Assembly (NCBI GenBank): GCA_965240325.2
Contig: OZ251237.1
Coordinates: 1,673,601 to 1,737,600 of the forward strand
DNA from: Rebecca billardiae RCC1528
Taxonomy: Eukaryota; Protista; Haptophyta
DNA length: 64,000 nt
Direction of reading: 5' to 3'
Position numbers and translations under genes: made by a program. The notes under the pieces are model-generated. The model did no database searches. It was not told where the DNA came from and saw only the letters and a list, made by a program, of their open reading frames with translations. This document shows positions 1-63,933 of this stretch, in pieces (position 1 is the first letter of the stretch; each line of letters opens with the position of its first letter).

Positions 1-502
1 GGGGCAGCAGCTCGGTCGGATCGGCACGTGCAATGGCGCATCGTGCCGGGCGAGGCGACCAAGTGGCCCGCCGCGCACGCGCTCTCTGTCTCTCCCGCGC
101 GCGCGCGCGCCGTGTCGCCCGCGGCCCGGGCAGCTCCGCGGGCACGGGGCAGCGCGTGCTGATAGTGCTTGGCTGCAGCCCGCGCGGCGTGGTGCGGAGG
201 CGCTGCGGCGGGCACATCCACGCATCGTCGAGGACTGCATGGTACGCCGGTGGCTCTCGCCCGCCGGGCTCGAGCCACACGCGCGGCAGGCACTGACCAC
301 GGTGGGGCTACCGGACTGCGCTCACTTTGGTCCGCCGAAGCTTCTGCGGATGCTCCTGACCCTCAATCAGCAATCGCCGACGCCGCCGCCGGTTTGAGCC
401 CTGTTTCGTCAAGCGTAGCCCACAAAAGTTTCCGACGGCGACAGGTTCCTCCGTCAAACCCATACAGGAGCGCGCGTGGCCGTGGGCGGCACGCTGCCGC
501 CG

Positions 503-5569: not shown

Positions 5570-5705
5570 GATATGATATGATATGATATGATATGATATG
5601 ATATGATATGATATGATATGATATGATATGATATGATATGATATGATATGATATATATATATATATATGATATATGGGGGTAGAGAGAGAGAGAGAGAGT
5701 AGAGA
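5570..5705. repeat. (ATATG)n microsatellite followed by (TA)n and (AG)n tracts
   Basis: Direct reading of the sequence. Confidence 0.95.
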
Positions 5706-8879: not shown

Positions 8880-9715
8880 TGGCGCGGCCCCGGCGCACGC
8901 CCATCCGGCCGCACGCCGCCGCGCCAGCCGCTCCTGCACGCGGGCTGACCGAGGCGCCAGCCTCACCCAACCGCCGCTGCTTGCCGTGGAGCTGGTCGGG
9001 AGATGATGGGGTGGGTCGGCTGCTCCCAGAAGCTCCCCACGCGCGCCGCGCGTGCTGCATGCGGGTGCGGCGGGTCGGCGCGGCCCCGCCGCGCGCCCAT
9101 CCGGCCGCGCGCCGCCGCGCCAGCCGCTCCTGCACCCGGGCTGACTCAGGCGTCAGCCTCACCCAACCGTGAGCCGCCAGCTGCTTGCCGTGGAGCTGGT
9201 CGGGAGATGATTTGGTGGGTCGGCTGCTCCCAGAAGCTCCCCACGCGCGCCGCGCGCGCTGCATACGGGTGCGGCGGGTCGGCGCGGCCCCGCCGCGCGC
9301 CCATCCGGCCGCACGCCGCCGCGCCAGCCGCTCCTGCACGCGGGCTGACTCAGGCGTCAGCCTCACCCAACCGTGAGCCGCCAGCTGCTTGCCGTGGAGC
9401 TGGTCGGGAGATGATTTGGTGGGTCGGCTGCTCCCAGAAGCTCCCCACGCGCGCCGCGCGCGCTGCATACGGGTGCGGCGGGTCGGCGCGGCCCCGCCGC
9501 GCGCCCATCCGGCCGCGCGCCGCCGCGCCAGTCGCTCCTGCACCCGCGCTGACTCAGGCGTCAGCCTCACCCAACCGTGAGCCGCCAGCTGCTTGCCGTG
9601 GAGCTGGTCGGGAGATGATGGGGTGGGTCGGCTGCTCCCAGAAGCTCCCCACGCGCGCCGCGCGCGCTGCGTGCGGGTGCGGCGGGTCGGCGCGGCCCCG
9701 CCGCGCGCCGATCCG
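8880..9715. repeat. 204-bp tandem repeat, about 4 copies
   Basis: GAGCTGGTCGGGAGATGAT recurs at about 8989, 9193, 9397 and 9601. Confidence 0.95.
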
Positions 9716-9838
9716 GCGCCATCTAGTCCGCCGCTAAGTCATCGGCGCAGCTCAGAATCTCAGTGCCATAGCTAGGCCGCGCAGCTGCCGCCTGTTACTC
9801 ATCGATCAGCTGATCTAAGTAATCATCAAAAGCGGCGG

Positions 9839-22885: not shown

Positions 22886-25800
22886 ATGGCGACGGAGGGC
22901 GCGACGCTCGCCGCCGAGGTCGGCGAGCTCGCCGCGCGGCTGGGCGCGCTCGCGTCGGCGGTGGGCGCGGGCACGCACGCGCCGACGGACGCCTCCGCCA
23001 CGCACGCCCTCCTCCGCCGCCTCGCCGCCGACCTCGGCGCCGCGGACGAGCGCGCGCACGCGCTCGGCCTCGTGCGCGCCGCGCGCGCCGCGGCCGCGGC
23101 CGACGCGGCCGCCGGGGTGCGCGACGGCGGCGGCGGCGAGCTCGACGCGCTGGTGCGCGGGGTGCGCGACGCGGTCGCCTCGCGCCGCGCCGAGCTCGCG
23201 CGCGCCCTCGCCTCCGCGCACGCCGCCGGCCTGCGCGCCTCCGACTCTGCGCTCGACGAGGCGGTGGGCGCGCGAGAGACGGGCGCAGGAGGCGGCGGCG
23301 GGCGCGGTGGCGGCGGCGGCGCGTGGGGCGAGGCGCTCTCGCTCGCCGCGCTCGCCGACGTGCCGCCGTACGAGGCGCTCGTCCCCGCGCTCACCGCGCT
23401 CTGCGCCGCCCCCGCCGCCGCCGCCGCCGCCGCAGCCGCCGCCGCCTGCTGCGGCCGTGCTGCGCGCGTGGCGCGTGGTCGGCGCCTTCTCCGCGCTCGA
23501 GCTGCTGGGCGGGGAGGGCGCGGAGCTGCTGCCCGGGGCGCTGTGCGCGGTGCTCCGCGCGGCGGACGCGTGCGCGGGCGCCCACGCGCCCGACGCGCCC
23601 GAGCTGCGCGAGGCCGCGCGCGCCGCGCACAGCCTGTGCGCGCGGCTGCTCGCGCGCGCGGACGAGGGCGGCTGCGCGCAGATCGGCGCCGCGCTCGCGC
23701 CGCTGCTGCGGCGGACGCGGGCGGCGGCGGCGGGCGGCGCAGGCGCCGGCGGCGAGGCCGAGGCCGAGGCGTGGCGCGTGCTGCGCGCGCGGCTGCTCCT
23801 CGCCGCCACCGTGCGCGCCGCGCGGGGCGGCGTGCACGTGCCCGCGCCGCACGCGCGCGCGCTCGTGCGCGCGCACTGCGACGCTCACGGCGCCACCGGC
23901 GTGGCGGCGGCGGCGGCTGACGGCGCGTCGTCGGCCGGCGCGCTGCTCGCGCGGCTCGACCCGAGCGCGGCGGCGCTGCGCGCGCTGCTGCAGCCGCCGG
24001 GCTGGGCGCGCTGGGTGGTGGCGGTGGCGGAGGCGGAGGCGGAGGCGGAGGCGGAGGCGGAGGCGGAGGCGGAGGCAACGCCCATGGCTGCCGGCGGGGG
24101 GGCGTCGGCAGCCACGCCCATGGCTGCCGACGCCGACGCCGCCGAGAGCGCCGACAGCCCGCCCCTCCTGGCCGCGGTCGCGGCGGAGGTCGCGGCCGCG
24201 CTCGGCGCGCCGACGCCCGCCGCGTGGCCCGCGCGCGGCGCCGCGTGCGCCGCGCGCGCGCACGCGCTGTGCGCCGCGCTCGCGCTCGCGCGCGCGCAGC
24301 CGACGCGCGCGCCCCTGCTCGGCGCGCTCGGCGCCGCGCGCGCGGGCGGCGCGGCCGCGGCGCACGCGCGGCTGCTGGGCGCCGCGCTGCGGCATGCGTG
24401 CGCGCCGCTGCCGCCGCACTCGCCGCCGGCGGACGCCGGCGCGTCCGCGGCGGACGGCGCGGACGGTGCGGAGGCGCGTGCGGCCGCCTCGCTCGGCTCT
24501 GCCGCGTGCAGCGCGCTGCTCGAGGCCGCGTGCGCGGACTGGGCGCAGCACGCGGCAGCAGACTGGGCGCTGCACGCGGGCGCGGCGGCGGGCGGCGGCG
24601 AGGAGGCCACGCGCGTGCTCGCGCGCGCCATCGGCGAGTGCTGGCCCGCGCAGCCCGCCGCGCGCGCCGCCGCCGCGCTGGCGCGCGCGGGCGCGGCGTG
24701 CGCGCGCGCGCTGTGCGCCGAGCGCGCGTGCGCGGCCGCGCTGCTCGGCGCCGCCGCGGCGGGCGGCGGCGGCGCGGCGTGCGCGCGCGCGCTGCGCCGC
24801 GCGCTCGCGAGCCCCGCCGCGGCGCGCGCGCTCGCCGCCGCGGGCGCGGCGGACGGCGCGTGGGCGCGCGCGCTCGGCGGCGCGCCGCCCGCCGCGCTGC
24901 GCGCGCTCTGCGCCGGCGGCGCGGGCGGCGCGGCGCTGGCGGTGGGCGCGGGCGCCGCGCGCCGCGCCGCGGCCGCGTGCGCGCCCTCGGCGCGCGCGCT
25001 CGGCGCGCTCGCCGCCGCGCTCGGCGCGGCGGGCGCGGCCGGCGCGCACGCGGCCGACGCGGCGGCCGCGCGCGCCGCCGTGCACGCCGTCGCCGAGCGC
25101 GACGCCTCCGCGCTGCTCGGCCGCTCCTCCGCCGCGGCGGACGCGCTCGGCCTCGGCCTCGCCGCAGGCGCGGGCGCGGAGGGCGGCGCCGAGGGCGGCG
25201 GCTGCGCGGCCGCGGCCGCGGCCGCCGCGCGGCTGAGCGCGCTGCTGCGCGTGCCGTGGGTGCGCGATCGGCTGCTGCGCGCGCGCGGCGGCGCGCTCGC
25301 CGCCGCGCTGGGCGGCGGCGGCGGCGAGGGCGCGGCCGCAGGCGCGGCGCTGGTGTGCGCGGCCGCGGCGTGCGCGGGCGCGGACGGCGGCGCCGCGCTG
25401 TGCGCTGCCGCGCCCGCGCTCGCGCACGCGCTGCGCACCCACGCCGACGCGGACGCGAGCTCGGCCGGCGTGGGCTGCGCGCAGGCGCTGTGCGGCGTGG
25501 GCGCGCGCGCGCTGCAGCTGGGCGCGCACGCGGCCGAGCCGATGGCGGCGCTCGAGGCGGCCGGGGCGGCGGCGGCGGAGGAGGAGGAGGAGCGCCCGGC
25601 AGCAGCGGCAGCGGCAGCAGCGGGTGCGGTGGGTGCGGCGGTGCCGGTGTCGCTCGGGCGGACGGCGGAGTGGCTGGGCGGTGCGCACCCCGCGCTGCGC
25701 CCCGCGCTGGGCGCTGACCGCTGCGGCCTGCGCGCGCTGTGCGCCGCGCTCGACGGCGCGGGCGCGGCGCCGCCATCGCAGCCGACGCCACCGCCACGGC

Positions 25801-36502: not shown

Positions 36503-38086
36503 GCGCGCGGCTCGCCGCTTGCCCGCGTGGCGCCGCCACCATTCAATTCTGAGTAAGTGACGGTTCGTCCGACCCGGACTCACCGGACTGTCCGATGCGA
36601 CTCACACTGCCCTCGTCATCGCGCTATCTCTGCATCAGGGATGGTTGTCGGCTGGATGCATGCGTCACCGCTAATCTCGCCTGCCTGAGCTGTTAGTGCG
36701 TCTCATTATTCTTATAGTAATATATATTATAAACTGTATAAGGCAGACATACAGCTGCTCGCAAGTCGTCAAGGCTATACATGCAGGAAGCTATACGCTC
36801 TGTTTCACCGCCGAGCCTACGTACTGTATAGTCGTCGTAGCAGTCAGATCGATGAAACTCGTCGTCATCGGTATAGCTTACCGGCGTGAGGTGCCGATCG
36901 AGAACGGTCAACGTCAGTTACGGAATACGGTTCGGGCGGGCGTCGCCCGTCCGCGCCGGGCCGTGCCGCAGTCCGTGCCTGATCAGGCGGCTAGCGGCAT
37001 CATCAGGTTGTTCGGCCCCGCTCGTCCCGGGCGGGGGCGGCCGGACCCGATCGGGCAAAGGATCGCAAGCTGCAGGCAACGCTTTGACTGGGACACCTCC
37101 GGCCCCGCTCGTGCCGGGCGCTGCCAACGGCTGACGGCTCCCAGGAAGTGCTCGAAAGTTGAATGACGACGTCGGGACCGTCCGACTGACTCAGAATCGG
37201 CGCTGGCGCCACTCGGTTGCGGCTGCGTCGCACTCACTCGCAGGCCCGCGCAGCCGAGTGGCAGACGGGCTATACATCATCACAGGGCTCACCGGCGCGC
37301 CCTCATGCGACTATGCGCTCGAGCTCGGCGCTGCGTCGTCATAGATTATGCAGTTGGCAAGGCCAACGCCGGTCATAGCACGCGGTTGGCAAGCCACCCA
37401 CGCGCATCGGCGCGTCGTCATAGATTATGCAGTTGGCAAGGCCAAAGCCGGTCATAGCACGCGGTTGGCAAGGCCACTCGCGAGCCCGCCTGGACGTGCC
37501 GGAGCTGCGGCGTCGTCATCTCATGCAGCTGCCATCGCCCCTGTCTTGCCGACAGCAGAAGGGCGGGCACGACGGCGGCGCGCGGCCGCATCCGAGGCAA
37601 GCATCAGCGGATGTGCAGCGAGACGGTTCGATGCCAGCTGGACGATCATGGAGCAGTGCATGTCCCTGCAGAGCTGGCCGTGCTCTGCGGCGGGCCGGCC
37701 GCTGCCGAGGGACCATCCGAACGCCCGTGGCCGCGTCGCGCGAGAGAACGCTCCTCGACTTTGACGGCTTCCCTGTGCCAGCCGGCTCGACCGCCCCGAC
37801 AACGCCGACGTCGCGAGCGCACCACCCAAAGGCCTAGTGCGTGAGGCGCAAGTCACGAGTCGCATTTCGTCGCGCCCGGCGCGGCAAGATGTTTGTTTGA
37901 TTCCTTGATGAGGCGCCCGAGCGAGCGCGGCAGCAAATTGATCTGGTGCTTACTGCTTAGCGGGGCATCAAAAAGTCTGATGATGAAATTCCTCCGTCCA
38001 AGACCGCGGTTCTGCGCTGGAGCGAGCTGGAGAGCGAGTCGCGCTTCACCGGTAGAGTGCAGTCCGCCAGCGTGCGTCTCGGCAGA

Positions 38087-39307
38087 ATGGGGGCGGCAAA
38101 CGCGATCGCCCGCGACGTGCTGCGCGCAGCGAAGGACCACGCGTCGGCTGACGAGGTGCGCGATGACCTCGCTGCGCGCATCCGTGCGGCGGGCATCTCG
38201 TCGGCGGTCGTGCGCGTGGTGAGACCCGGGCTCGAGCCCATTGAGTGGTCGTTTGCGCGCGCGGACGGCGAGACGGTCTTCCGCCTCTTCTCGGGCACGA
38301 AGCTCTTCACGGCGGCGGCGATCATGCGCCTCGTCGCGCAAGGGTCGATGGGCCTTGAGGACGACGTCGGTACCCTCGTCGGCGCCGCCGATCGCCCGGG
38401 CTGGGATGGCCTCGTCGGCGTGAGCGTCCGCCAGCTGCTCTCGCACACCTCGGGGCTGGTCGACTCGAGCGTCGCGGCGTTCATGTCGACGCACCCCCCG
38501 GCCATACAACCGGGCCCACCCATCGAGGAGCTGCTCTCGCGCTTCGACCTGCGCGCCTCGTCTCGGCGCACGGACGGGGTGGCGCGGTACGCCAACGTGA
38601 ACTACCTCCTCCTCGGGCTGCTGCTCGAGCGCGTCACGCGGCAGCCCTACTCGGCCGCGCTGGGCGCGCTCGTGCTCGCGCCGCTCGGCTCGCGCGCGTG
38701 CTTCTCGTACGCGGACGCCGCCGCGCTTGGAGACAGTCCGAGAGCCATCGGCACCGCCGGCGTCGGCACCCTCCTTGCCCTCAGCGCTGTCCTCGGCCGC
38801 GCAGCGGCCGGGGCGCTCGTCGACAGGCGCGCCGCGCCGTCACCGCCGCTGCCGTGGGGAACGCGCGCGCTCAGGCAGTTCGACCTGGACGGGCTGTCGT
38901 TCGGCGGGCTGCTGGGGCGTGCGCGCGACTTCTCGCCGCTCCTCGAGGCCGCGCTCTGCACGGCGGATCCGTCCGCGGCGTCAGCGGTGCCTGCTGCGCT
39001 TGCGGCCGAGCTCGCGCCGCCGGTCGTGTTTGCCGAGCACGGCGCGCAGCCCGTCGGCATCGAGGCCAAGGCGGGCGCCGGCCTCGGGTGGAAGCTTGGA
39101 GTGTGCGCGGACGGCACGCACTTCTGCACACACGAAGGCGGCGGCGGTGGCTTCGCCACGGAGATGCGCGTATACCCGTCCCTTGGCGTCGGCGTGGTCG
39201 TGCTGCTCAACTGCTGGAGCCTCGACATGCGCGAGGCTCGCCTCTCGCACGCGATCTGCGAAGCCGTGCGCTCCGCGCACGCGCGCGGCACCCTCGGCGC
39301 GGCCTAG
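38087..39307 (+). CDS. Beta-lactamase/AmpC-fold serine hydrolase, intronless
   Basis: SxxK (FSGTKLF), LLSHTSG, YxN (YANVNY), HEGG, GVVVLLN. Confidence 0.88.
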   Translation: MGAANAIARDVLRAAKDHASADEVRDDLAARIRAAGISSAVVRVVRPGLEPIEWSFARADGETVFRLFSGTKLFTAAAIMRLVAQGSMGLEDDVGTLVGAADRPGWDGLVGVSVRQLLSHTSGLVDSSVAAFMSTHPPAIQPGPPIEELLSRFDLRASSRRTDGVARYANVNYLLLGLLLERVTRQPYSAALGALVLAPLGSRACFSYADAAALGDSPRAIGTAGVGTLLALSAVLGRAAAGALVDRRAAPSPPLPWGTRALRQFDLDGLSFGGLLGRARDFSPLLEAALCTADPSAASAVPAALAAELAPPVVFAEHGAQPVGIEAKAGAGLGWKLGVCADGTHFCTHEGGGGGFATEMRVYPSLGVGVVVLLNCWSLDMREARLSHAICEAVRSAHARGTLGAA

Positions 39308-39386
39308 TCGTCCGACAATCATCAGCCGCGGCCATCGTCGCCGCCGCGGCCGTACTCTTCGTGACTCGGGCTGACCGGCGGCGGAG

Positions 39387-39424
<38 letters not shown>
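39387..39424. repeat. (CT)n microsatellite
   Basis: Direct reading. Confidence 0.9.
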
Positions 39425-39885
39425 ATGCCACTATATGCCATGCATACTAGTGCGCTGCGCTGCCGACCGTGACTCGTGAGAGTCTGATTCGCGCGCGGCT
39501 GATAGATGCTGATGATGATGTCGTATATATAGCGTCGTCCGGTTATGATGGCATATCGTCATCATGATGCAGCAGCAGCTAGTGCGCACAGCGCAGCGCG
39601 TAGCCGTATACGTTACGGTCGGACGATATGATGTGAATCATGTAGCGCGTACGTGCTGTTGGCTAATAGCCGCGTCGTCGTTGCATGTGTCGCACGCCCA
39701 GTGGCAGTGCGGCCAGTGCCATATATATAGTGGCCAGTTCGCCTGGCAGATCAGTTCCGCCGCGCCTATACTTCTTGCATGCGCGAGGTGCGCCTTCACG
39801 CCGCTGCGCCGCCTCCGGTCGTCACGGTCGTGCGTCATCTCACACCGGCCCCATCGCTCGATGCGCCGCGCGCGCGGCCGGCTCG

Positions 39886-42800
39886 TCAGAGCGCCGGGTC
39901 GGGCGTGACGCGGATGTACCGCCTGCCCGACGGCACGGCCTGCGTCTGGAAGCCCTTGGGCAGCGCCGCGCGCGCCGCCTCGTCCGAGAGTGCCGGCAGC
40001 ACCTGCGGCGTGCGGCGCGCGGCCGTCAGCGGCGCGTCGGCGCGCGCGCGCGCTCCCCCGCACACGCGGCGCACGGCGCGCGCGCGCGGTCTCGCACCAT
40101 GCACGGCTTGCCCGGCATCCAGTTGGCGGGCGTGGCCACCTTGTGCACCGCCGTCATCTGCAGCGAGTCGATCGCGCGCAGCACCTCTCCAAAGTTGCGC
40201 CCCGAGCTCGCGGGGTAGAGGAGCTGCAGCTTGAGCGTCTTGTCAGGCCCGAACACGAAGACGGCGCGGCAGGTGAGCGGCATGCCCTCCTGCGGGTTGG
40301 TGCCGTCCAGCATCCCGAACGCAGTCGCAATCTCGCGCGTCGGGTCGGCAATGATCGGGTAGCTGCGCACGCGCGCGCACGCGGCGGGGCCAGAGGGCAG
40401 AGGGCGCGCGCTCAGCCGGAGCGGCGTGCGCGTGGGCGCGTGCGCGCGCGGGGGGGGGGCGTGCGCGCTCACGGGAAGCCTCGGTCTGTGGGCAGCCTCG
40501 CGAGCGCGAGCACGTCCTGGCCCCACGCGATGTGCGAGCCGGTGGTGTTGCACGAGAGCGCGAGCACGCGCACTTTGCGCGCGCTGAACTGCGGCAGCAG
40601 CTGCGCGACGCTGCCGAGCTCTGTCGTGCACACGGGCGTGAAGTCGTCCGGGTGCGAGAAGAGCGCCGTCCACCAGCCGCCCCGGCCGAGCAGCTCGTGC
40701 AGCCGGATGCGCCCGTGCGTCGACTCCGCCACAAAGTCGGGCGGGAGCTGGCCGAGCAGCAGGCCGGCCACGGCCGCAGCGGGTGCGCGCCCGGCGGGGT
40801 GCGCGATGATGGCCGTGCCGCCCGTGGCCGTGCCGCGCGATGGCGTCGCAGTCGCCGTCGTCGTCGCCGTCGACGCGGCCGCGGGCGTGGCGGGCGGCGC
40901 CGTCCGCGCCCGCGGCGGCCCCCCGCGTGCTCCTCCTGCTGCCGCGTGCTCCTTCTCCTTCGCGTCGAGCCACTCGGCTGCGAGGTGCACACACGCGCGC
41001 GCAAGAGGACCAGGCGGTCAAGGCGGTCACGGGGGCGGTCACGCGGGGCGACGCGCACGGCCGCGCGCGGGGTGCGGGGCGGGGAGTGAGCGCGGGCCGC
41101 CGCGCGCCACGCGCTCGCCCGCGCGCGCGCGCGCGCTGCGCGCACAGATGGGGGCGAGCGTGGCCGCGGCGAGCGGCACCGCGCCGACAAAGTCCGCGAC
41201 GAGCTGCGAGAGCCGAGGGTGCGCGCGCAGCCCCGCGGCCTGCGCCACGTGCGCGTGCGTGGCCGCGAGCAGGAAGGGCACCACCTTGAAGTCGGCGATC
41301 GTGGGCTCCGCCGAGCCGCCGATGAAGCGCCCGCCCTGCGACGGCGCGGCGGCGCGCGGCGCGCGTGAGCCGCGCGCGGCAGCGGACGGCGGCGTCGGCC
41401 CCGAGCGCGCGGCGTGCGCGCGGTGTGCGGCGTGCGCGCGCGTGGGCGCGTGCGCGCGTGGGCGCGTGCGCGCGTGCGCGCACCTCTGCGCGCAGGAAGC
41501 GCTCCGCCCACACGCCGAGCGCGGCCTCGTACGCGGCGGCCTCGGCGAGCGCGTCGTCGGGCGGCGGCGCGAAGCCCATCAGCGGGTACACCACCTTCTT
41601 GTGGTGCGGCAAGTAGCACTCGAACGCGAACGCGTCCATCGCGCTGTCCAGCTGCGCGGCGAGGCCGGGCTGCGAGCGCGCCGGGTAGAGCTGCTCCGCG
41701 CCGTACGCGCGCGCGCCGTGCCGCAGGATGGCGGAGGACTCGCCGATGCTCACGCCGCCGGGCTCGTGGAGCGTGGGCACCTTGTGGAACGGGTTGAGCC
41801 GGCCGAACGCCTCCGACTTGAGCCCGCCCGCCGCGTCCGGCGCCGCGGGCGCCTCGATCGCGCCGAGCTCGCGCAGCAGCAGCGCCGCGCCCGCGCAGTT
41901 GGCCGACGGGCCGAGCGCGTACAGGCACGCGCGCGCGGCGGCGCAGCGCGCGCCGATGTGCGGCAGGTTGGGCGCGAGCGCGTCGAGCGTGAGCTCCAGC
42001 TGCGTCCGCCCGCGCGCGTTCATCGCGGCGAGCAGCTCCTCCGCGTCCGCGCGCCCGCCGAGCACGTGCGCGCGCGGGTCGGCGCGGAGCGCGGCCGCGA
42101 GCCAGAACGCGCAGCGGCGGCGCGCGAGCTGCACGGCGGCGGGGTGGAGGACGAGGGCCTGCGCCTCGCGCCACGGCGCGACGGGGTGGAGCGTCTGCAC
42201 GTGCAGCACGCCGAGCTCGTCCGGCGCGCCCGAGAAGACCGTGAGCTGCATGCGCGCCGCGTACTCGCGCGTCCACAGCAGCCGGTACGCGCTCCGCACA
42301 GCCCAGCGCGCGACGTGCGCGCGCACGCCGTAGACCGCGGCGTTCTCGAGGCACGCGCGGACGGGGCGGCAGCCGATGTGCTCGGGCGCGCACACCGCGT
42401 CGAGCACCTCCGCCGACGGCGCGTACCCGCGCGCGCCCGCCGCCGCCTCGGTGGCGGCCGCCAGCGAGAAGCCGACGTGCCGCAGCGACCCCTCGAGCGC
42501 GTCGACGGCGCGCTCGTCGGTGGCGAAGTAGAAGGCGCCCTTGCGCTGGACGAGCGTGGCGAGCAGCTCGGTCACCACCTCCTCCGTCGTGAGGTACGCC
42601 CCGCCCGTCGCGTCGTCCACCACCGAGAGCGCGAGCAAGAACTCGCCGAGGTCGCCGCCCGGCGTGCCGTGCACGCGGCGCGACTCGCGGCCGTCGATGC
42701 ACGCGAGGACGGCGGGCGTGGCGTCGAGCGTGGGGTGCGCGGCGAGCGCGAGCTGCGACGCCGCCTCCTCCGGCCGCAGCCCGTACGCCCCCGCCTTGAT

Positions 42801-42926
42801 CGAGACGCACGTCCACGTCGCGTCCACGGCCATGGTCGGCGAGCAGACGAACAGTGTAGTGCTGGTCGCCGAGCGCGACCAAGCGGCTGCTCCGCTGCTG
42901 TTTTCCGAAGCGGCGACTGCGGCCAT
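39886..42926 (-). CDS. Fusion protein: CxDGR/HxxC carbonic-anhydrase-like domain + glutathione S-transferase + 1-Cys peroxiredoxin (Prx6). Exons 42926-41484, 41335-41146, 40977-40473, 40362-40098, 40002-39886
   Basis: [21 protein letters not shown]; [19 protein letters not shown] and FIGG..PTIADF; Prx6 [44 protein letters not shown]. All four GT..AG introns keep the frame. The start could instead be 42833. Confidence 0.85.
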
Positions 42927-43122
42927 GTTTCGTCATCGCGGGCAAGGGCCGAGCGATCCGGCCGAGCGCGGCGCGCCCGGACTGGCCCGCCTCGCCCTGA
43001 GCGCACGCCGCTCGACCGAGCGAGGGCAGCCCTGCTGCTTGGCGCCCAGCCGCTCGCCAAGGGCCCGCCTGCGAGGGCCGCGCCGTCTCGCGCGGCGGCC
43101 CCCACGGGGCGGCCGCAGCGGC

Positions 43123-44563
43123 ATGTCACGCGCGCGCGTGTACGCCGACGTGAACACCGAGCGCCCAAAGGAGTACTGGGACTACGAGTCGCTCTCCGTG
43201 CAGTGGGGGTGCGCGCGCGGCCGGCGGCCATGGCGGCGCGCGGCCCGCCGCGCGCCTCCTTTGCGCGCGCGCGCGCGCGCCGCGGCCGACGCGCGCGCCC
43301 TCCGCCGCCGCCGCCGCGCGCGCTCGCGCCGCGCCGCGCCTCGCGCCGCGCCGCGCGCCGCGCCTCCGTGCGAGCAGCGAGCAGGACGACTACGAGGTCG
43401 TGCGCAAGGTGGGGCGCGGCAAGTACTCGGAGGTCTTCGAGGGCGTGTGCGTGCGCACGGGCGCCAAGTGCGTCGTGAAGATCCTCAAGCCGGTGAAGAA
43501 GAAGAAGATCAAGCGCGAGATCAAGATCCTGCAGAACCTGCGCGGCGGCACCAACATCATCACGCTCCTCGACGTCGTGCGCGACCCGCAGTCGAAGACG
43601 CCGTCGCTCATCTTTGAGCACGTGAACAACACGGACTTCAAGACGCTCTACCCCGCGCTGAAGGAGCCGGAGGTGCGGTACTACATCTTCGAGCTGCTCA
43701 AGGCGCTCGACTTCTGCCACTCCAACGGCATCATGCACCGCGACGTCAAGCCGCACAACGTGATGATCGACCACGAGAAGAAGCAGCTGCGGCTGATCGA
43801 CTGGGGCCTGGCCGAGTTCTACCACCCCAACCGCGAGTACAACGTGCGCGTGGCCTCGCGCTACTTCAAGGGGCCCGAGCTGCTCGTGGACCTGCAGGAC
43901 TACGACTACGCGCTCGACATGTGGTCGCTCGGCTGCATGTTCGCCGGCATGATCTTCCGCAAGGAGCCCTTCTTCCACGGGCACGACAACTACGACCAGC
44001 TCGTCAAGATTGCAAAGGTGCTCGGCACCAACGAGCTCTTCGACTACCTCGACAAGTACAACCTCGAGCTCGACCCGCACTTCGACGGGATCCTCGGGCG
44101 GCACGTGCGCCGGCCGTGGCAGAAGTTCATCACGCCGGAGAACCAGCACCTCGTCACGCCGGACGCGCTCGACCTGCTCGACCGGCTGCTGCGGTGCGCG
44201 CGCGGTCGCGCGCGCGCGCCGCCGGCTCGGCCGCGGCCCGCGGCTCACGCGCGCGCCGCGCGCCGCGCCGCGCCGCGCCGCGCCGCGCGCCCGCCCGCCG
44301 CCGCGCCGCGCAGGTACGACCACCAACAGCGGATCAGCGCGCGCGAGGCGATGGCGCTGCCCTACTTTGCCGCCGTCAAGAATGGGCCGGCCGGCACGGA
44401 CGACGCGTCCGCAAACCCGGCGGGCGCGCCGGCGGCAGAGGCGGGCGCGTCGAGCGAAGCGCCGCCGCCCGCGGCGGCGGCGGACGCGGCGGCGCAGCAG
44501 CCGCCGCAGGCGGCGGCGGCGAGCAGCAGTCAAGCCGCGGCCGCGCCGCCGCCGCCCGGCTGA
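43123..44563 (+). CDS. CK2A: Casein kinase II catalytic (alpha) subunit; introns 43209-43377 and 44194-44313
   Basis: [53 protein letters not shown]. Confidence 0.98.
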
Positions 44564-50599: not shown

Positions 50600-51404
50600 T
50601 GCTGTGCAGCAGTGCTGCAGTGGATCCCGGGAGACGTGGCAAGGGCGTGCGCCGCGGCAAAGGACCATCGGTATTTGATGGTCCTTTGGCCGCGGCGAGA
50701 TCTTCAATCTTGAGCGCTTCCGGCGCCGTTCTCGCGTCCGGCGGGTCCGGAATTCATACGATGGCGGACGGTGCCGCCCGCCCTCTCCCCCGGGCGTGCT
50801 CGGAGGCGTGCGCGGCGGTGGCGCGCGGCGGCGTGGTGGCGGCCCCGTCGATCGCCGCGTGCGTGGCGTAGCGGCGGTCCCGCGAGTTCGCGGCACGCGC
50901 CGCCGTCGCTCGCCGCTCCGAGCCGCGCGCGCGCGGTCGCGCTCGGCGCCCGACAGCGCGCGTGCGCCCCCGCGCCGAGTACGCGCCGCGCGCCGAGCGC
51001 TCGCCGAGTGAGGCGGCGCGAGCCGCGTGCGGTGGAGCCTCTGTGCTGTCTCACACTGCACGCGAGCTGAGTTGATGCTCTCGCGCCGCGTCCGCTCTCC
51101 CTCGGCCGGCGCGTTGGCTGCTGCTGAGGCTGCGGTCGCGGCCGCGCGCCGCGCCGAGCAGCGCATCGCAGCGCTTGGCGACGCGCTCGTCGCCGTGCGC
51201 CATTATGACGGGCGCGTCCCACTGCGTGCAATCGCGCTCCACCGAGGCTGCCGCGGCTGCGCCGCGCTCGAGCTGAGCGCGCGGCGCGCCCGCAGCGGGC
51301 TGCTGCTGTGGCTGGCTGCTGCCGAGCGCGGCCCGACGAGGAGCGGCCGCCCGGGAGCTGCGGGCGTGCAGCGCCACAGCTGTCCCGGCGCCTCGCCCTA
51401 GGTC

Positions 51405-57113: not shown

Positions 57114-60100
57114 ATCTGGTGGTCCGGGCCAAATCCCGAGAGCGTTCGTCGCTCGGCGTCGCACGGACGCCGTCGCAGGGCTTGGCGAGCGGACGTTCGA
57201 CTCGCGGTGCGAGCGCGCGCCGTGCGTGCGCGTGTGGCGGCGTCCACGTCGCCGCTGCGCCACCGGTGCTCTAATCGCGGGTGTTCCCCAACCTATCCCC
57301 CGCCTGCCCCGCACCCGCTCCGCGTCCCGACGCGCCACACCGATCTACTTTGCTAGGTCTGTTCGTAACACGGTGCGAATTCGCGCCCGCCCGCACGCCG
57401 CTGCGCGCGGGGATGCAGGAAGTGTATGGAGGGGCGCGGAGTTGTTATTCAGGCGGCGGGTTACTCGTGATGCACGCACATGCGCAGCGGGAACGCTTAC
57501 TTTTGCATGGGTGACCGGGAATTTGCATCAGACTAACTTGCTGCGGCTGCGCCCGGCACGGCCGCGCAGGACCGCGCTCGCCGCGCGCAGCAATGGCGAC
57601 GGCTGTGCTCACCGTGGGCAAGGGCAAGCGTTCCTGCGCGAAGCCTAGGAAGCCCAAGCTGCATCGCAAAGGTGCCTAACGCATCGGGCGCCACGTCTCT
57701 GCCGCATCTGCATGGCTGCGCATGGCCGCGGCGCTCAGCCGCACGAGATGCTCAAGCTGCGCGCGCGCGAGGCCGCGAGCGAGGTGGACCACTCGATCAT
57801 GCCGAACGAGAACTACCTGGCGGAGGTCAAGCGCAGCGTCAACAGCCTCGTCGCCATCAAGGCCCAGCGGAAGAAGAACAACCTGCTGCGTGTAGCCAAG
57901 CTGCGGCTCTTCTCGTGAGACGCGCTCGTCTTGCATGCCTTCACCTCGCTCGACGACGAGGGCGTCGTGCACTAGGCGCGCGAGAAGGACCGCACACTGA
58001 GCATCGTGGGCTCGCGCCAGCCCGAGAGTTCTCGACGTGGCTCAACCTGGGCATGCGCCACCCGATCCCGCCGCCGGTGGCTGGCTCACGTGAGAGCGCG
58101 CTGCGCAATCGCGAGCACGCGGGCGCGGGCGTGATGATGATCGGCAGCGAGTCGGCGGCGCGGCCGTGGGCGCAGGCCGTGGGCGCCGTGCTGGATCGCT
58201 TGGAGCACTACGGCAAGTCCGCGCGCCCGCGCGGGCAGCCGCATGTCCTCCTCCTCTCGGCGGACACGGGCCAAACGCAGCGCACTCGCGCGCGGCCACG
58301 ATCGCCATCGTGCGCAACTATGAGGGTGTTGCGCTCGCGTCGTCGGAGGCGATCGCCATCTCGGAGCGGCCGGACTCGGACATGCCCGAGCTATGGAGTG
58401 CGGACGCCGACGGGATCAATGACGTGATCCGGAGCGGCCGGCTCCCACCGCGACCGGCGCCGCCAGCTGCCGCCGCTGCACGTGGCCAGCGCGGCAGGGC
58501 GGCGCGGCTGGCGGCGCTGCAGGCGGCGCGGCCGGCGACGCGGCCGGCGGCGCGGCCGGCGGCAGCGGCGGCAGCGGCAGCGGTAGCGGCGTAGCTGGCG
58601 GTGCCGCCGGCGCTGGAGTCCGCGCGGCCGGTTGCGCGGTCGGCGGCGCGGCCGGCGGCGCGGCGGGCGGCGCGGCTGGCAACGCGGGCGCGTCCGCGGG
58701 CACGGGCGGCGGCGCGGCCGGCGCGAGCGGCAGCGGCAGCGGCGTGGCTGGCGGCACAGTCGGCGCTGGCGTCCGTGCGGCCGGTGGCGCGGCCGGCGGC
58801 GCGGCCAGCGGCGCGGCTGACAGCGCGGGCGGTGGCGCGGCCGGCGGCGGCACTGCCGGCGGCGGCGCGGCCGGCGGCGCGGCCGCGCGCGGCCGGCGCG
58901 GCCGGCAGCAGCGGCGGCAGCTGCAGCGACAGCGGCGTGACTGGCGACACAGCCGGCGTTGGCGTCCGCGCGGCCGGTGGCGCGGCCTGCGGCGCGGCCG
59001 GCGGCGCGGCTGACAGCGCGGGCGATGGCGGGCCCGGTGGCGGCGCGCCCGACGGCGGCACGCCCGACAACTGCGCGCCAGGCGGCGGTGCGCCCGGCGA
59101 CGCGGCCGGACGCGGCCGGCGGCGCGGCTGGCAACGCGGGCGCGGGTGCTGGCGGCGGCGCGGGCGGCGCGGGCGGCAGCTGCAGTGGCGTGGCTGGCGG
59201 CACAGCTGGCGTTGGCGTCCGCGCGGCTGGAGGCGCGGCCGGAGGTGCGGCCGGCGGCGCGGACAGCGGCGCGGCTGACAGCGCTCGCGATCGCGCGGCC
59301 GGCGGCGGCGCGGCCGGCGGCGGCGCGGCCGGCGGCGGCGCGGCCGGCGGTGGCGCGGCCGGCGGCGGCGCGGCCGGTGCGGGCGGCAGCAGCAGCACTG
59401 GTGGCAGCAGCAGCGGCAGCTGCGTGGCTGGCGGCACCGCTGGCGCTGGCGTCCGCGCGGCCGGTGGCGCGGCCGGCGGCGCGGCCGGGGGCGCGGCCGG
59501 GGGCGCGGCTGGCAACGTGGGCGCGGGCGCGGGCGCGGGCGGCGGCGTGGGCGGCGCGGCCGGCAGTGGCAGCGGCGTGGCTAGCGGCACAGCCGGTGCT
59601 GGCGTCCGCGTGGCCGGTGGCGCGGCATGTGGCGCGGCCAGCCGCGCGGCTGACAGTGCGGGTGGTGGTGCGGCTGGTGGCGGCGCGGCCGGCGGCGGCG
59701 CGGCCGGCGGCGGCGCGCAGCAGCGCGGCCTCGGTGGCAGCACTGCCTCGGCAGGCGGCAGCGCGGCCGGCGGCGGTTTTGGCGGCGGCGCCGAGGCGGC
59801 CGACTACGCGGAGGAGCAGAAGGCCATCGTGGCGTGCACCGGCGCTTACGTCAGCCTCGCCAGCCTCGCCGGCCAGGGCTCGCACAACGTCCCACCGCTC
59901 CGCTTCAACGTCTGGGCGGTCACGGAGGCGGGCGCAGACGGCGTCTCGCCTCAGGCGGCGGGGGCGCCTCGTGCAGCTCGCGGACGAGCAGGTGCAGGGG
60001 CATTTCGTGCAGGTGACCAAGCGTGCGATGCCGCTCGTGCACGCGCGCAAGTCACTCGACTCATTCGTCCGCGAGTACGCCGAGGGGAAGAAGTCGACGG

Positions 60101-61518: not shown

Positions 61519-62464
61519 GATGCGCGTCTGGGTGCGGCCGCGCTCGCTGGCTGCACCCGCGGCGCTGCGGCCGGCGTGGCTGCTCTGGTCACCGCTGCGC
61601 TGGTGGCTGCTCCTCCTCTGGGAGTTGTTTCTTCCAGGTGCGTGTGCGTCGGCGGTAGGCCGCCCTCAGCCCTCGCTCTCTCCACTCGTGCACCTGCCCT
61701 GCTTGCTCTCTGCTTTCGATGGGGGCGCCTCGGAGCCGCTTCGAGGCGTCCCCGTCTGCAATCTTCTCATGCTCTATCTGCTTTCGATGGGGGCGCCTCG
61801 GAACCGCTTCGAGGCGTCCCCGTCTGCAATCTATCTTCTCATGCTCTGCTTTCGATGGGGGTGCCTCGGAACCGCTTCGAGGCGTCCCCGTCTGCAATCT
61901 TCTCATGCTCTGCTTTCGATGGGGGCGCCTCGGAACCGCTTCGAGGCGTCCCCGTCTGCAATCTTCTCATGCTCTGCTTTCGATGGGGGCGCCTGGGAAC
62001 CGCTCCCAGGCGTCCCCGTCTGCAATCTTCTCACGCTTCGCAGTCTCGCTTGCCTTCATCGCCTGGCGGGTGGGTGCTGCTCTCTCCTTCTCTGCCGCCT
62101 CCTCTGCAGTCTGCCGTGCACTGCTGTGTGTGGGATGCGACCTGCTACCTTATCTGACGCTACGCGTGCGTGTCTCGCGCCTGCTTCCCGCCTGCGCCGC
62201 CGCCGCCGCGCATGTCTTCGTGCCCACTGTCGCATGCAGTCTGGATCGTCCTTACTCATACAACCCTGCGGGGAGCCCCTCTGGGCCTCTGCCGCCTTCG
62301 GTCCTCATCGGCTTCTGTCGGCGTAGTTGCTCGAATGCATCGGCGAGTCCTTCCTGGTCGGCGTCGCATCCTGGACGGCTTCGGGGGTGTGACCTAGTCA
62401 CCTCACGCGTTTATCAACGCGGCCCCCACCTCAATCTACTCTCATGTGGGTCTACCGAGTGAGT
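61519..62464. mobile_element. Longer relative of MITE family D; left end not found
   Basis: 61519-61634 resembles 12497-12607; the right end CTCTCATGTGGGTCTACCGAGTGAGT|TA is identical to 12664-12689. Confidence 0.65.
61705..62033. repeat. Five-copy 64-68-bp tandem repeat, each unit containing a hairpin
   Basis: GCTTTCGATGGGGG at 61712, 61780, 61848, 61912 and 61976. Confidence 0.93.
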
Positions 62465-62609: not shown

Positions 62610-62890
62610 CCCTAACCATTTCCCTAACCCTAACCCTAACCATTTCCCTAACCCTTACCATTTCCCTAACCCTTACCATTTCCCTAACCCTTACCTGCGC
62701 CCTAACCCTTACCTGCGCCCTAACCCATACCATTTCCCTAACCCTTACCTGCACCCTAACCCTTACCTGCGCCCTAACCCTTACCTGCGCCCTAACCCTT
62801 ACCATTTCCCTAACCCTTACCTGCGCCCTAACCCTTACCTGCGCCCTAACCCTTACCTGCGCCCTAACCCTTACCTGCTCCCTAACCCTA
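62610..62890 (-). repeat. Inverted variant telomeric array (CCCTAA-CCCTTA-CCATTT/CCTGCG 18-mers)
   Basis: Direct reading. Confidence 0.93.
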
Positions 62891-62900
62891 GGTTAGGTGA

Positions 62901-62931
<31 letters not shown>

Positions 62932-63059
62932 GGTTAGGGTGAGGTTAGGGTTAGGGTTAGGGTTAGGGTTAGGGTTAGGGTTAGGGGTTAGGGTTAGGGT
63001 TAGGGTTAGGGTTAGGGTTAGGGTTAGGGTTAGGGTTAGGGTTAGGGTTAGGGTTAGGG

Positions 63060-63100
<41 letters not shown>

Positions 63101-63208
63101 GGTTAGGGGTTAGGGTTAGGGTTAGGGGTTAGGGTTAGGGTTAGGGTTAGGGTTAGGGTTAGGGTTAGGGGTTAGGGTTAGGGTTAGGGGTTAGGGTTAG
63201 GGTTAGGG

Positions 63209-63249
<41 letters not shown>

Positions 63250-63704
63250 GGTTAGGGTTAGGGTTAGGGTTAGGGTTAGGGTTAGGGTTAGGGTTAGGGG
63301 TTAGGGTTAGGGTTAGGGTTAGGGTTAGGTTAGGGTTAGGGTTAGGGTTAGGGTTAGGGTTAGGGTTAGGGTTAGGGTTAGGGTTAGGGTTAGGGTTAGG
63401 GTTAGGGTTAGGGTTAGGGTTAGGGTTAGGGTTAGGGTTAGGGTTAGGGTTAGGGTTAGGGTTAGGGTTAGGGTTAGGGTTAGGGTTAGGGTTAGGGTTA
63501 GGGTTAGGGTTAGGGTTAGGGTTAGGGTTAGGGTTTAGGGTTTAGGGTTAGGGTTAGGGTTAGGGTTAGGGTTAGGGTTAGGGGTTAGGGTTAGGGTTAG
63601 GGTTAGGGTTAGGGTTAGGGTTAGGGTTAGGGTTAGGGTAGGGTTAGGGTTAGGGTTAGGGTTAGGGTTAGGGTTAGGGTTAGGGTTAGGGTTAGGGTTA
63701 GGGG

Positions 63705-63756
<52 letters not shown>

Positions 63757-63933
63757 TAGGGTTTAGGGTTTAGGGTTAGGGTTAGGGTTAGGGTTAGGGT
63801 TAGGGTTAGGGGTTAGGGTTAGGGTTAGGGTTAGGGTTAGGGTTAGGGTTAGGGTTAGGGTTAGGGTTAGGTTAGGTTAGGGTTTAGGGTTAGGGGTTTA
63901 GGGTTTAGGGTTTAGGGTTAGGTTAGGGTTTAG
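62891..63933 (+). repeat. Telomere (TTAGGG)n
   Basis: About 1 kb of TTAGGG, G-strand oriented towards the sequence end. Confidence 0.99.

Follow-up and report, generated by a model that had tools for sequence, protein, structure and literature searches.

Natural hybrids that join a thiol peroxidase to a glutathione-dependent reducing partner are known among the Prx5-type peroxiredoxins (Prx), which are combined with glutaredoxin (Grx) in proteins such as PGdx of Haemophilus influenzae. In mammals the oxidised form of another peroxiredoxin, Prdx6, is glutathionylated after heterodimerising with the pi-class glutathione S-transferase (piGST) and is then reduced by glutathione (GSH), as stated in a passage of PMC7566464 that cites Manevich 2004 and Zhou 2016. 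Also relevant here is CDCA1, the zeta-class carbonic anhydrase (CA) of the diatom Thalassiosira weissflogii (PDB 3BOB, 3BOH, 3UK8, 7BEZ), described as having two lobes, with a 3-stranded and a 4-stranded sheet (PMC4413181); the metal ligands of CDCA1-R3 are Cys473, His525 and Cys535, alongside Val474, Asp475 and Gly536, and the enzyme hydrolyses carbon disulfide (CS2) besides CO2 (PMC8217695). The gene considered here lies in a 64,000-nucleotide stretch of DNA from the haptophyte Rebecca billardiae RCC1528 (contig OZ251237.1, positions 1,673,601 to 1,737,600; "the window" below means this whole stretch, and coordinates are counted from its first letter). Its predicted product carries, in order, an N-terminal domain of an unannotated family (the N-domain), a glutathione S-transferase (GST) and a Prx6-type 1-Cys Prx.

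The fusion protein resembles the mammalian pair PRDX6 and GSTP1 in that a Prx6-type 1-Cys Prx (corresponding to PRDX6 residues 12-224) has a GST as physical partner, but the fusion is covalent, its GST is Ser-type and delta/theta-like rather than Tyr-type pi, the Ser of the lipase motif (human GDSWG) is missing, and there is an additional N-terminal domain. With the Prx-Grx hybrids it shares the character of a self-contained GSH peroxidase made by fusion, differing from them in Prx subfamily (Prx6, not Prx5), in the fold of the partner (a two-domain GST, not Grx), in domain order and in having a third domain. No description of a natural GST-Prx6 fusion, of the N-domain family or of zeta-CA-like bacterial families was found among open-access papers. 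The GST-Prx6 fusion appears to be new, though hybrids of a thiol peroxidase with a glutathione partner were already known. By analogy with these systems, the protein, the product of a single nuclear gene, is probably a tethered Prx6 peroxidase recycled by GSH and GST, with the N-domain as an accessory module.

Gene model and recurrence of the three-domain architecture

Three-frame translation of positions 39700-43000 placed the gene on the minus strand (42926→39886), with five exons and four GT..AG introns. The spliced coding sequence (CDS) of 2520 nt encodes 839 aa, its sole stop being the terminal one, and the ATG at 42926 (-) is preceded by an in-frame stop two codons upstream. G+C content (GC) at the three codon positions is 0.74 (GC1), 0.57 (GC2) and 0.96 (GC3). 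The introns measure 148, 168, 110 and 95 nt, with donors GTGCGC, GTGCGC, GTGAGC and GTGCGA and the acceptor GCAG in all four; the casein kinase II alpha-type (CK2alpha) gene next door has the same GTGCGC donor and a CAG acceptor. The components of the gene are as follows.

39886..42926, minus strand: whole coding region of the tri-domain gene (839 aa), from the gene model and ortholog alignment
41484..42926, minus strand: exon 1, aa 1-481, an uninterrupted stretch coding for the N-terminal domain, the GST N-domain and the larger part of the GST C-domain
41336..41483, minus strand: intron 1, 148 nt, GTGCGC..GCAG, phase 0; junction continuous in P0012 and P0014
41146..41335, minus strand: exon 2, the remainder of the GST C-terminal domain
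40978..41145, minus strand: intron 2, 168 nt, GTGCGC..GCAG, phase 1; contains no ATG
40473..40977, minus strand: exon 3, the last residues of the GST, the 71-aa linker and the beginning of the Prx with its PVCTTE motif
40363..40472, minus strand: intron 3, 110 nt, GTGAGC..GCAG, phase 2; junction GFP/YPII continuous in L001 and L002
40098..40362, minus strand: exon 4, the Prx core and the start of 1-cysPrx_C
40003..40097, minus strand: intron 4, 95 nt, GTGCGA..GCAG, phase 0; junction CM/VLP continuous in L001 and L002
39886..40002, minus strand: exon 5, the Prx6 C-terminal tail and the TGA stop (39888-39886), from the PRDX6 alignment

An earlier note on this DNA had proposed a triple fusion joined in one stop-free frame by four canonical introns, and the junctions it gave (FLRAE/GGRFIGG, API-S/EWLD, GFP/YPII and PCM/VLP) all recur exactly in the spliced CDS. 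The window is DNA of roughly 75% GC (0.62-0.87 in 2-kb bins), and most frames on both strands hold open reading frames (ORFs) of many hundred codons; because such frames also run antisense to the fusion gene, where one reaches 1162 aa, an open frame is by itself weak evidence. The weight of the gene model lies instead in its colinearity with PRDX6, in the GST C-domain motif restored where exons 1 and 2 meet, and in the continuity of the junctions in a related locus (L001).

Related loci were found by an exhaustive profile search with the N-domain, three of whose relatives also carry GST domains. Besides the N-domain, P0012 (749 aa) carries GST_N and AhpC-TSA, with a GST_C_2 match that stays below its cut-off (19.5 bits, where 24.9 are required). 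P0014 (561 aa) continues from the N-domain through a GST into a Prx6, of which the initial 30 residues are present, and P0008 (400 aa), from a truncated contig, has the N-domain and GST_N. The genomic contigs of P0012 and P0014, namely L001 (GC 0.64) and L002 (GC 0.72), each have one uninterrupted ORF that runs from the N-domain through GST and linker into the Prx, with the remainder of the Prx lying 3' of introns placed elsewhere than in the window (after SHP and after STG in L001, after ELGSV and after SSG in L002). All four splice junctions of the window gene correspond to uninterrupted coding sequence in the L001 ortholog, and the introns of L001 and L002 fall where the window gene is continuous. 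The resulting fusion proteins of window, L001 and L002 (839, 731 and 771 aa, the orthologs having been spliced by eye) are colinear from end to end, with pairwise identities of 46-50% in the N-domain, 45-55% in the GST, 24-42% in the linker and 68-74% in the Prx. The head-to-head CK2alpha gene upstream is also kept on L002. Scanning of metagenomes with the fusion alignment yielded 51 N-domain relatives and no further triple fusion. The proposal of three domains in one gene is thus borne out by the gene model and by the architecture search, which found the same three-domain protein encoded on these two further contigs, and from the sequences compared the triple fusion is very probably a conserved gene architecture and no artefact of GC-rich read-through.

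Peroxiredoxin, transferase and linker

The features that define the catalytic part of the protein are these.

39889..40765, minus strand: Prx6-type 1-Cys peroxiredoxin domain, aa 616-839, across introns 3 and 4 (Pfam and PDB matches)
40628..40630, minus strand: Cys661, peroxidatic Cys of PVCTTE (PRDX6 alignment)
40766..41146, minus strand: linker, aa 545-615, across intron 2, of low complexity and poorly conserved (spliced CDS)
41147..41930, minus strand: GST domain, aa ~333-544, across intron 1, Ser-type and delta/theta-like (Pfam, PDB and subfamily profile)
41904..41906, minus strand: Ser341, opposite the catalytic Ser of delta-class GSTs in an S-A-x-C motif (PDB alignment)

The Prx is identified by its matches: Pfam AhpC-TSA scored 52.6 bits in exon 3 (cut-off 26) and continued in exon 4, where 1-cysPrx_C scored 36.4 bits (cut-off 21.1). 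Exons 3, 4 and 5 align colinearly to human PRDX6 residues 12-96, 100-186 and 190-224, with best PDB E-values of 1e-23, 1e-34 and 2e-5 and top matches that are all Prx6 proteins; because the three exons tile one Prx6 with neither gap nor overlap, introns 3 and 4 are validated. The segment F-T-P-V-C-T-T-E aligns with human PRDX6 Cys47, and the conserved Prx6 active-site Arg (which we take to be human Arg132) is kept, SSGRNF of the fusion standing opposite TTGRNF. The best matches were the Prx6 structures 2v2g, 1prx and 5b6m (1e-34 to 1e-27), against 1e-6 or weaker for the typical 2-Cys enzymes Prx1-4. No resolving Cys of the typical 2-Cys type was seen in the C-terminal arm in the PDB alignment, and the additional Cys residues (in LSC, LTC and PCM) are present in the Prx6 chain 2v2g too. 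The C-terminal 1-Cys peroxiredoxin anticipated in the earlier note is accordingly of Prx6 type with an intact active site (Cys661, the GRNF Arg and 1-cysPrx_C). The GxSxG lipase motif is absent from it, GRGGWW lying opposite human GDSWG, while the orthologs retain Ser at this position (GSWS or NSWS); this motif underlies the phospholipase A2 side activity of mammalian Prdx6 and is not required for Prx6 membership.

In the GST, Pfam recognised N-domains at aa 335-409 (GST_N_2 at 28 bits, cut-off 25; GST_N_3 at 23 bits, cut-off 22). The sequence G-P-S-A-N-C, containing Ser341, aligns with P-G-S-A-P-C of delta GSTs and its Ser is kept in the orthologs; the further glutathione-site (G-site) elements, a cis-Pro loop K-V-P-T-L and the Glu-Ser pair in G-E-S-S, likewise align with delta-class enzymes. 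A subfamily profile (A6), built from the orthologs and the nearest relatives, aligned with positions 3-212 of a 216-aa delta-class chain at an E-value of 1e-29. This alignment runs across the exon 1/2 junction, where the join restores a motif within the GST C-terminal domain, and so validates intron 1 and shows the GST to be complete; the separate exons gave no Pfam GST_C match because intron 1 splits that domain. Almost all PDB matches of the fused GST were of delta, epsilon, theta or phi class or unclassified, and none was named pi among the matches listed. The GST named in the earlier note was therefore upheld, as a complete cytosolic enzyme, but its class proved to be Ser-type and delta/theta-like and not the pi class of the mammalian analogy. 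It is like the delta, theta and phi Ser-type cytosolic GSTs in its full-length match, catalytic Ser, cis-Pro VPxL loop and Glu-Ser G-site, and unlike them in belonging to a protist-specific subfamily and in being embedded between two other domains. A word-index search with the GST as query found no relatives, a method that extreme composition limits. The nearest relatives (P0156-P0165, from marine metagenomes and metatranscriptomes, 460-560 aa) are tandem double GSTs without a Prx, and together with the fused GST they appear, by sequence, to form the protist-specific subfamily. Three of the five double-GST sequences that were read start with MG followed by small residues, resembling a myristoylation signal.

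Between these two domains lies the Thr/Ala linker that had been noted ahead of the Prx, comprising 71 residues with 23 Ala, 11 Thr, 8 Gly and 8 Pro; in the orthologs it is about 25 aa.

By analogy with mammalian Prdx6, from which we infer the self-recycling of the GST-Prx module, catalysis may be envisaged as follows. Cys661 would reduce H2O2 or an organic hydroperoxide and become a sulfenic acid, and the tethered GST would activate glutathione at its G-site (Ser341, the VPTL cis-Pro loop and the Glu-Ser pair), passing it across the flexible linker to Cys661-SOH to give Cys661-SSG. A second GSH would then free glutathione disulfide (GSSG) and regenerate the enzyme. The covalent tether would in this way stand in for the non-covalent piGST:Prdx6 heterodimer of mammals, and the N-domain would be an accessory module for oligomerisation, for regulation, or for binding a ligand or sulfur species.

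The GST and Prx might, alternatively, be translated together and act independently, the fusion ensuring only their co-expression and co-localisation. The linker is compatible with such beads on a string, being long and poorly conserved, and 1-Cys Prxs elsewhere use other reductants, among them yeast Prx1 with glutathione and thioredoxin reductase systems (PMC6745495). Against independent action, the fusion has been kept in three lineages that have diverged to 45-50% GST identity, and the only well-studied route of Prx6 recycling uses GST and GSH (PMC7566464, in the passage noted above); overall we consider it a somewhat unlikely explanation. Far less likely is that the gene mainly yields shorter products, either an N-domain-GST protein by retention of intron 2 or a Prx from an internal start. 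Intron 2 retention would lead to a stop about 40 codons downstream and leave such a protein without a Prx, and the linker of P0012 has a Met that could in principle serve as a Prx start; in the window gene, however, intron 2 holds no ATG and the linker no Met, the GST-linker-Prx junction is intron-free and in frame on both L001 and L002, and three lineages share the same adjacency, strand and phase.

Several observations weigh against a tethered, self-recycling peroxidase and should be set beside the evidence in its favour. The truncated product of intron 2 retention is one, and another is that the nearest GST relatives, the double GSTs, lack a Prx, which implies that the subfamily has functions of its own. 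The fused GST differs in class from the mammalian Prdx6 partner, which is pi. We know of no Ser-type GST that recycles a Prx6. The length of the linker is not conserved across the orthologs, the related loci are all genomic contigs, and open reading frames are cheap at the GC content of the window. Lastly, the N-domain is 46-50% conserved and predicted to be well folded, and hence has some role beyond what this explanation provides. The tethered peroxidase nonetheless remains the reading preferred here, at the probability given at the outset.

The N-terminal domain and its family

The remaining domain of the protein, for which carbonic-anhydrase-like metal chemistry had been suggested, contains the following features.

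41943..42749, minus strand: N-terminal domain, aa ~60-328; its family is unannotated and its predicted fold zeta-CA-like (profile search, alignment and model)
42687..42701, minus strand: C76-I-D78-G-R80 (C[VI]DGR in the family), with a Cys that orthologs do not conserve
42522..42524, minus strand: Ala135, at the near-invariant His of the family HTD motif (alignment)
42369..42380, minus strand: H183-I-G-C186; the next two residues are R-P here and G-H in the family motif GCGH (alignment)

No Pfam, NCBIfam or PDB sequence match was obtained for the domain (Pfam on the window exons, PDB by phmmer and two profiles); the PDB sequences that did appear, a somatostatin receptor, Artemis and IF1, were dismissed as chance matches. 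With 87 family members as queries, Pfam at E<=10 gave scattered chance matches and no CA family (Pro_CA or CdCA), and NCBIfam on nine sequences matched the rhodanese part only. The family, defined by a domain of about 280 aa, is nevertheless large: exhaustive profile search returned 1011 representatives at E<=1e-3, of which 220 reach E<=1e-30, where a word-index search with the N-domain query had found one relative. In the 87-sequence alignment, in which the window N-domain is 25-37% identical to bacterial members, the signature reads C[VI]DGR, GTPGGDxGE, FYxHTDxHA, HxGCGHLRL, GxHxE, HP and QLxxTxxxLAxxLP. Among the best 150 of the 1011 representatives, 132 keep CxDGR, HTD, GCGH and GxHxE together, 55 are standalone (<=345 aa) and 69 carry a rhodanese domain. 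A search of reference genomes with a 23-sequence canonical subset found the canonical form mainly in Myxococcota.

AlphaFold models of the window N-domain (predicted confidence score, pLDDT, 87.7) and of a bacterial member (P0021, pLDDT 94.9) were compared with the PDB using Foldseek. For both, repeats of CDCA1 were the top 5-6 matches and the only confident ones (probability 0.72-1.00), with beta-CA and LCIB appearing far down the list as weak matches. The models place a 3-stranded sheet ahead of a 4-stranded one, an order that agrees with the two lobes of CDCA1, and the family motifs C[VI]DGR and GCG resemble Cys473-Val474-Asp475 and Cys535-Gly536. CDCA1 consists of three tandem repeats, and the family domain occurs as four tandem copies in Cyanophora. 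Compared with CDCA1, the N-domain has about 70-90 extra residues and a helical insert separating HTD from GCGH, and the window clade has lost the candidate His ligand and does not conserve the Cys residues. Kinship with CDCA1 must further be judged against the modest Foldseek scores (E 0.008-0.3; template modelling score 0.34-0.38 by query and 0.46-0.52 by target), against a comparison of ligand residues made through motifs, and against the lack of a sequence or profile link between the family and CDCA1 by any such method. The suggestion of a CA-like domain was thus partly sustained, in a predicted fold that resembles CDCA1 and in the likeness of motifs at the level of the family, and partly not, as there is no membership by sequence and the ligand set is not conserved.

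Two groups of eukaryotic relatives may be recorded here. P0002 and P0003 of Cyanophora paradoxa (EukProt, about 1880 aa) have four stretches matching the family and no Pfam domain of any kind, and their best-matched copy has canonical SCIDGR, HTD, GCGH and GxHxE motifs. About 30 metagenome contigs of 1-1.7 kb (L086-L130) encode an N-domain relative 24-31% identical to that of the fusion; in one (L092, positions 32-1381 (+), 449 aa) a signal-peptide-like N-terminus precedes a variant with CLDDR, HCTD and HGDSH, the second Cys being replaced by Asp. By their sequences, contigs of this type are taken to be another eukaryotic lineage with a remodelled site.

The C-x-D-x-R and H-x-x-C motifs pointed out in the earlier note do exist, as C76-I-D78-G-R80 and H183-I-G-C186, and the window N-domain keeps CxDGR, GTPGGD, D137, E237 and H261-P. 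However, the near-invariant His of each of the HTD, GCGH and GxHxE motifs is replaced, by A135, P188 and P235. At the HTDxHA position the window has ATDERA and the other GST-fused proteins CTD or ATD; at GCGH the window has GCRP and the others GCRH, GDRH and GCRP; and at GxHxE, where the window has GAPDE, the others have lost the His too. The first Cys (C76 in the window) is Ala in P0012 and Thr in P0008, the second (C186) is Asp in P0008, and the position of H183 is occupied by H, Y or N across the wider family. In the Asp/Arg dyad, D78 is invariant in the 87-sequence alignment and R80 nearly so. The four GST-fused N-domains are monophyletic and sit on a long stem (SH-aLRT 99-100), with a path length of about 2.9 to the nearest outsider and about 1.1 within the clade, and among the best 150 representatives HTD, GCGH and GxHxE are jointly missing solely in three GST-fused proteins. 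Which residues act as metal ligands in the canonical family is itself inferred. The notion of conserved CA-like ligands did not hold for this clade, which has no conserved Cys-His-Cys set, the His being replaced and Cys residues missing in P0012 and P0008; because the family His is lost and the Cys is not conserved, CA-like metal catalysis with hydration of CO2 or carbonyl sulfide (COS) is unlikely in it, and the window N-domain, judged on these motifs, is probably not a carbonic anhydrase. Since it is well folded in prediction and 46-50% conserved, the domain is functional in some other way.

These observations bear directly on the idea that the N-domain is an active beta/zeta-type metalloenzyme hydrating CO2, COS or CS2 and coupling inorganic-carbon or sulfur chemistry to the GST-Prx module. 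Zeta-CA alone tops the fold search for two independent models, the window copy retains C76, D78, R80, H183 and C186, CDCA1 acts on CS2 as well as on CO2 (PMC8217695), and many bacterial relatives are fused to rhodanese, sometimes beside genes for sulfur transporters and bestrophin. Such an enzyme is made very unlikely by the replacement of the near-invariant His in four of four GST-fused proteins, together with the Cys substitutions in P0012 and P0008, the variability of the H183 position and the lack of a Pro_CA or CdCA match described above.

The bacterial relatives supply most of the functional context. The rhodanese-fused members (mainly Myxococcota, about 476 aa) have a homologous N-domain (29-34% identity, pairwise E-values of 1e-13 to 1e-18) and keep all four motifs (CxDGR, HTD, GCGH and GxHxE), but have an N-terminal rhodanese instead of a C-terminal GST-Prx. 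Gene neighbourhoods were examined in 80 bacterial loci (L004-L083, mostly Myxococcota), in about 70 of which the family gene was among the filtered ORFs, mostly as the rhodanese fusion. A gene for a bestrophin-type anion channel occurs in 11 loci with a rhodanese-fused family gene, adjacent and on the same strand in 7, and three further kinds of neighbour recur in 4 of the 80 loci each: YeeE/YedE-type Sulf_transp with DUF6691, a TauE sulfite exporter, and OsmC with MarR. The bestrophin association is of note for a CA-like fold. Five standalone members had no common neighbours, their surroundings being heterogeneous. By domain content, the rhodanese fusions point to sulfur transfer, and the gene neighbourhood of the family is compatible with a function that involves small anions of sulfur or carbon together with oxidative stress, with no reaction defined.

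From this context it might be proposed that the fusion protein handles reactive sulfur species instead of, or besides, peroxides, the degenerate CA-like domain binding a sulfur ligand, the GST transferring or resolving glutathione persulfide, and the Prx Cys serving as a persulfide or sulfenyl relay. The association of bacterial members with rhodanese and sulfur-transport genes would agree with this, as would the OsmC/MarR neighbours, which give a loose link to thiol peroxidases; yet the neighbourhood signal is weak and is heterogeneous for the standalone members, and the Prx and GST sequences show ordinary peroxidase and GST signatures throughout, so that we hold this role to be quite improbable. 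A broader proposal, which we also regard as unlikely though slightly less so, is that the family is a large branch of the beta/zeta-CA fold whose canonical members, mostly from Myxococcota and half of them joined to rhodanese, would be Cys-His-Cys metalloenzymes acting on small sulfur or one-carbon molecules (COS, CS2 or related anions), and that algae took over a catalytically remodelled copy to sense ligands or deliver substrate within a self-contained glutathione peroxidase. For the window gene, a tethered peroxidase with an accessory N-domain continues to be favoured.

Surroundings of the gene and significance of the fusion

Upstream, the fusion gene faces its CK2alpha neighbour across a short spacer.

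43124-44563, plus strand: casein kinase II alpha-type kinase gene (Pfam Pkinase, E 4e-54), with an intron at about 43209-43377, head-to-head with the fusion gene
42927..43123, no strand assigned: 197-bp spacer between the fusion gene ATG and the CK2alpha gene, shared by the two head-to-head genes

The spacer is likely a bidirectional promoter region. Just downstream, on the opposite strand, a 416-aa ORF at 38057-39307 (+) matches Pfam Beta-lactamase (a serine hydrolase; E 1e-34), and a (CT)n microsatellite lies at about 39380-39425. Further off, tandem arrays were noted at 8881-9717 (a 204-bp unit present four times, 95% matches), at 58489-59712 (a GC-rich 12-mer array of about 1.2 kb), at 24647-25061 (degenerate GC-rich repeats of 63-82 bp, in the region of 0.87 GC) and at 5570-5673 ((GATAT)21). 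ARAGORN called tRNA-Ala(CGC) at 24670-24764 and at 50856-50936 (+), the former being doubtful as it is 95 nt long and sits inside GC-rich tandem repeats. GGTTAG, a telomere repeat of TTAGGG type, is repeated about 169 times at 62901-63930, up to the right end of the window, and is preceded by an 18-mer array with C-strand telomere units (62628-62889) and a 64-mer array (61708-62037). From these repeats, which account for the low GC and strong GC skew of its last 2 kb, the window appears to reach the end of a chromosome.

In summary, a natural fusion of GST and Prx6 constitutes Rosetta-stone evidence for an ancient and general partnership that has been shown biochemically so far for mammalian piGST only. 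It suggests that a Ser-type GST can fill the Prx6-recycling role, and that a GSH peroxidase can be made as a single, cofactor-free polypeptide. The N-domain exposes a family of more than 1000 sequence clusters without a Pfam or NCBIfam model, for which a rare diatom enzyme, the cadmium carbonic anhydrase, is the sole structural relative and whose chemistry would bear on the evolution of carbonic anhydrases and on bacterial sulfur metabolism. Were the family indeed an unrecognised branch of the CA fold and the algal copy such a recruited module, the gene would tie peroxide detoxification directly to the state of reactive sulfur or inorganic carbon.

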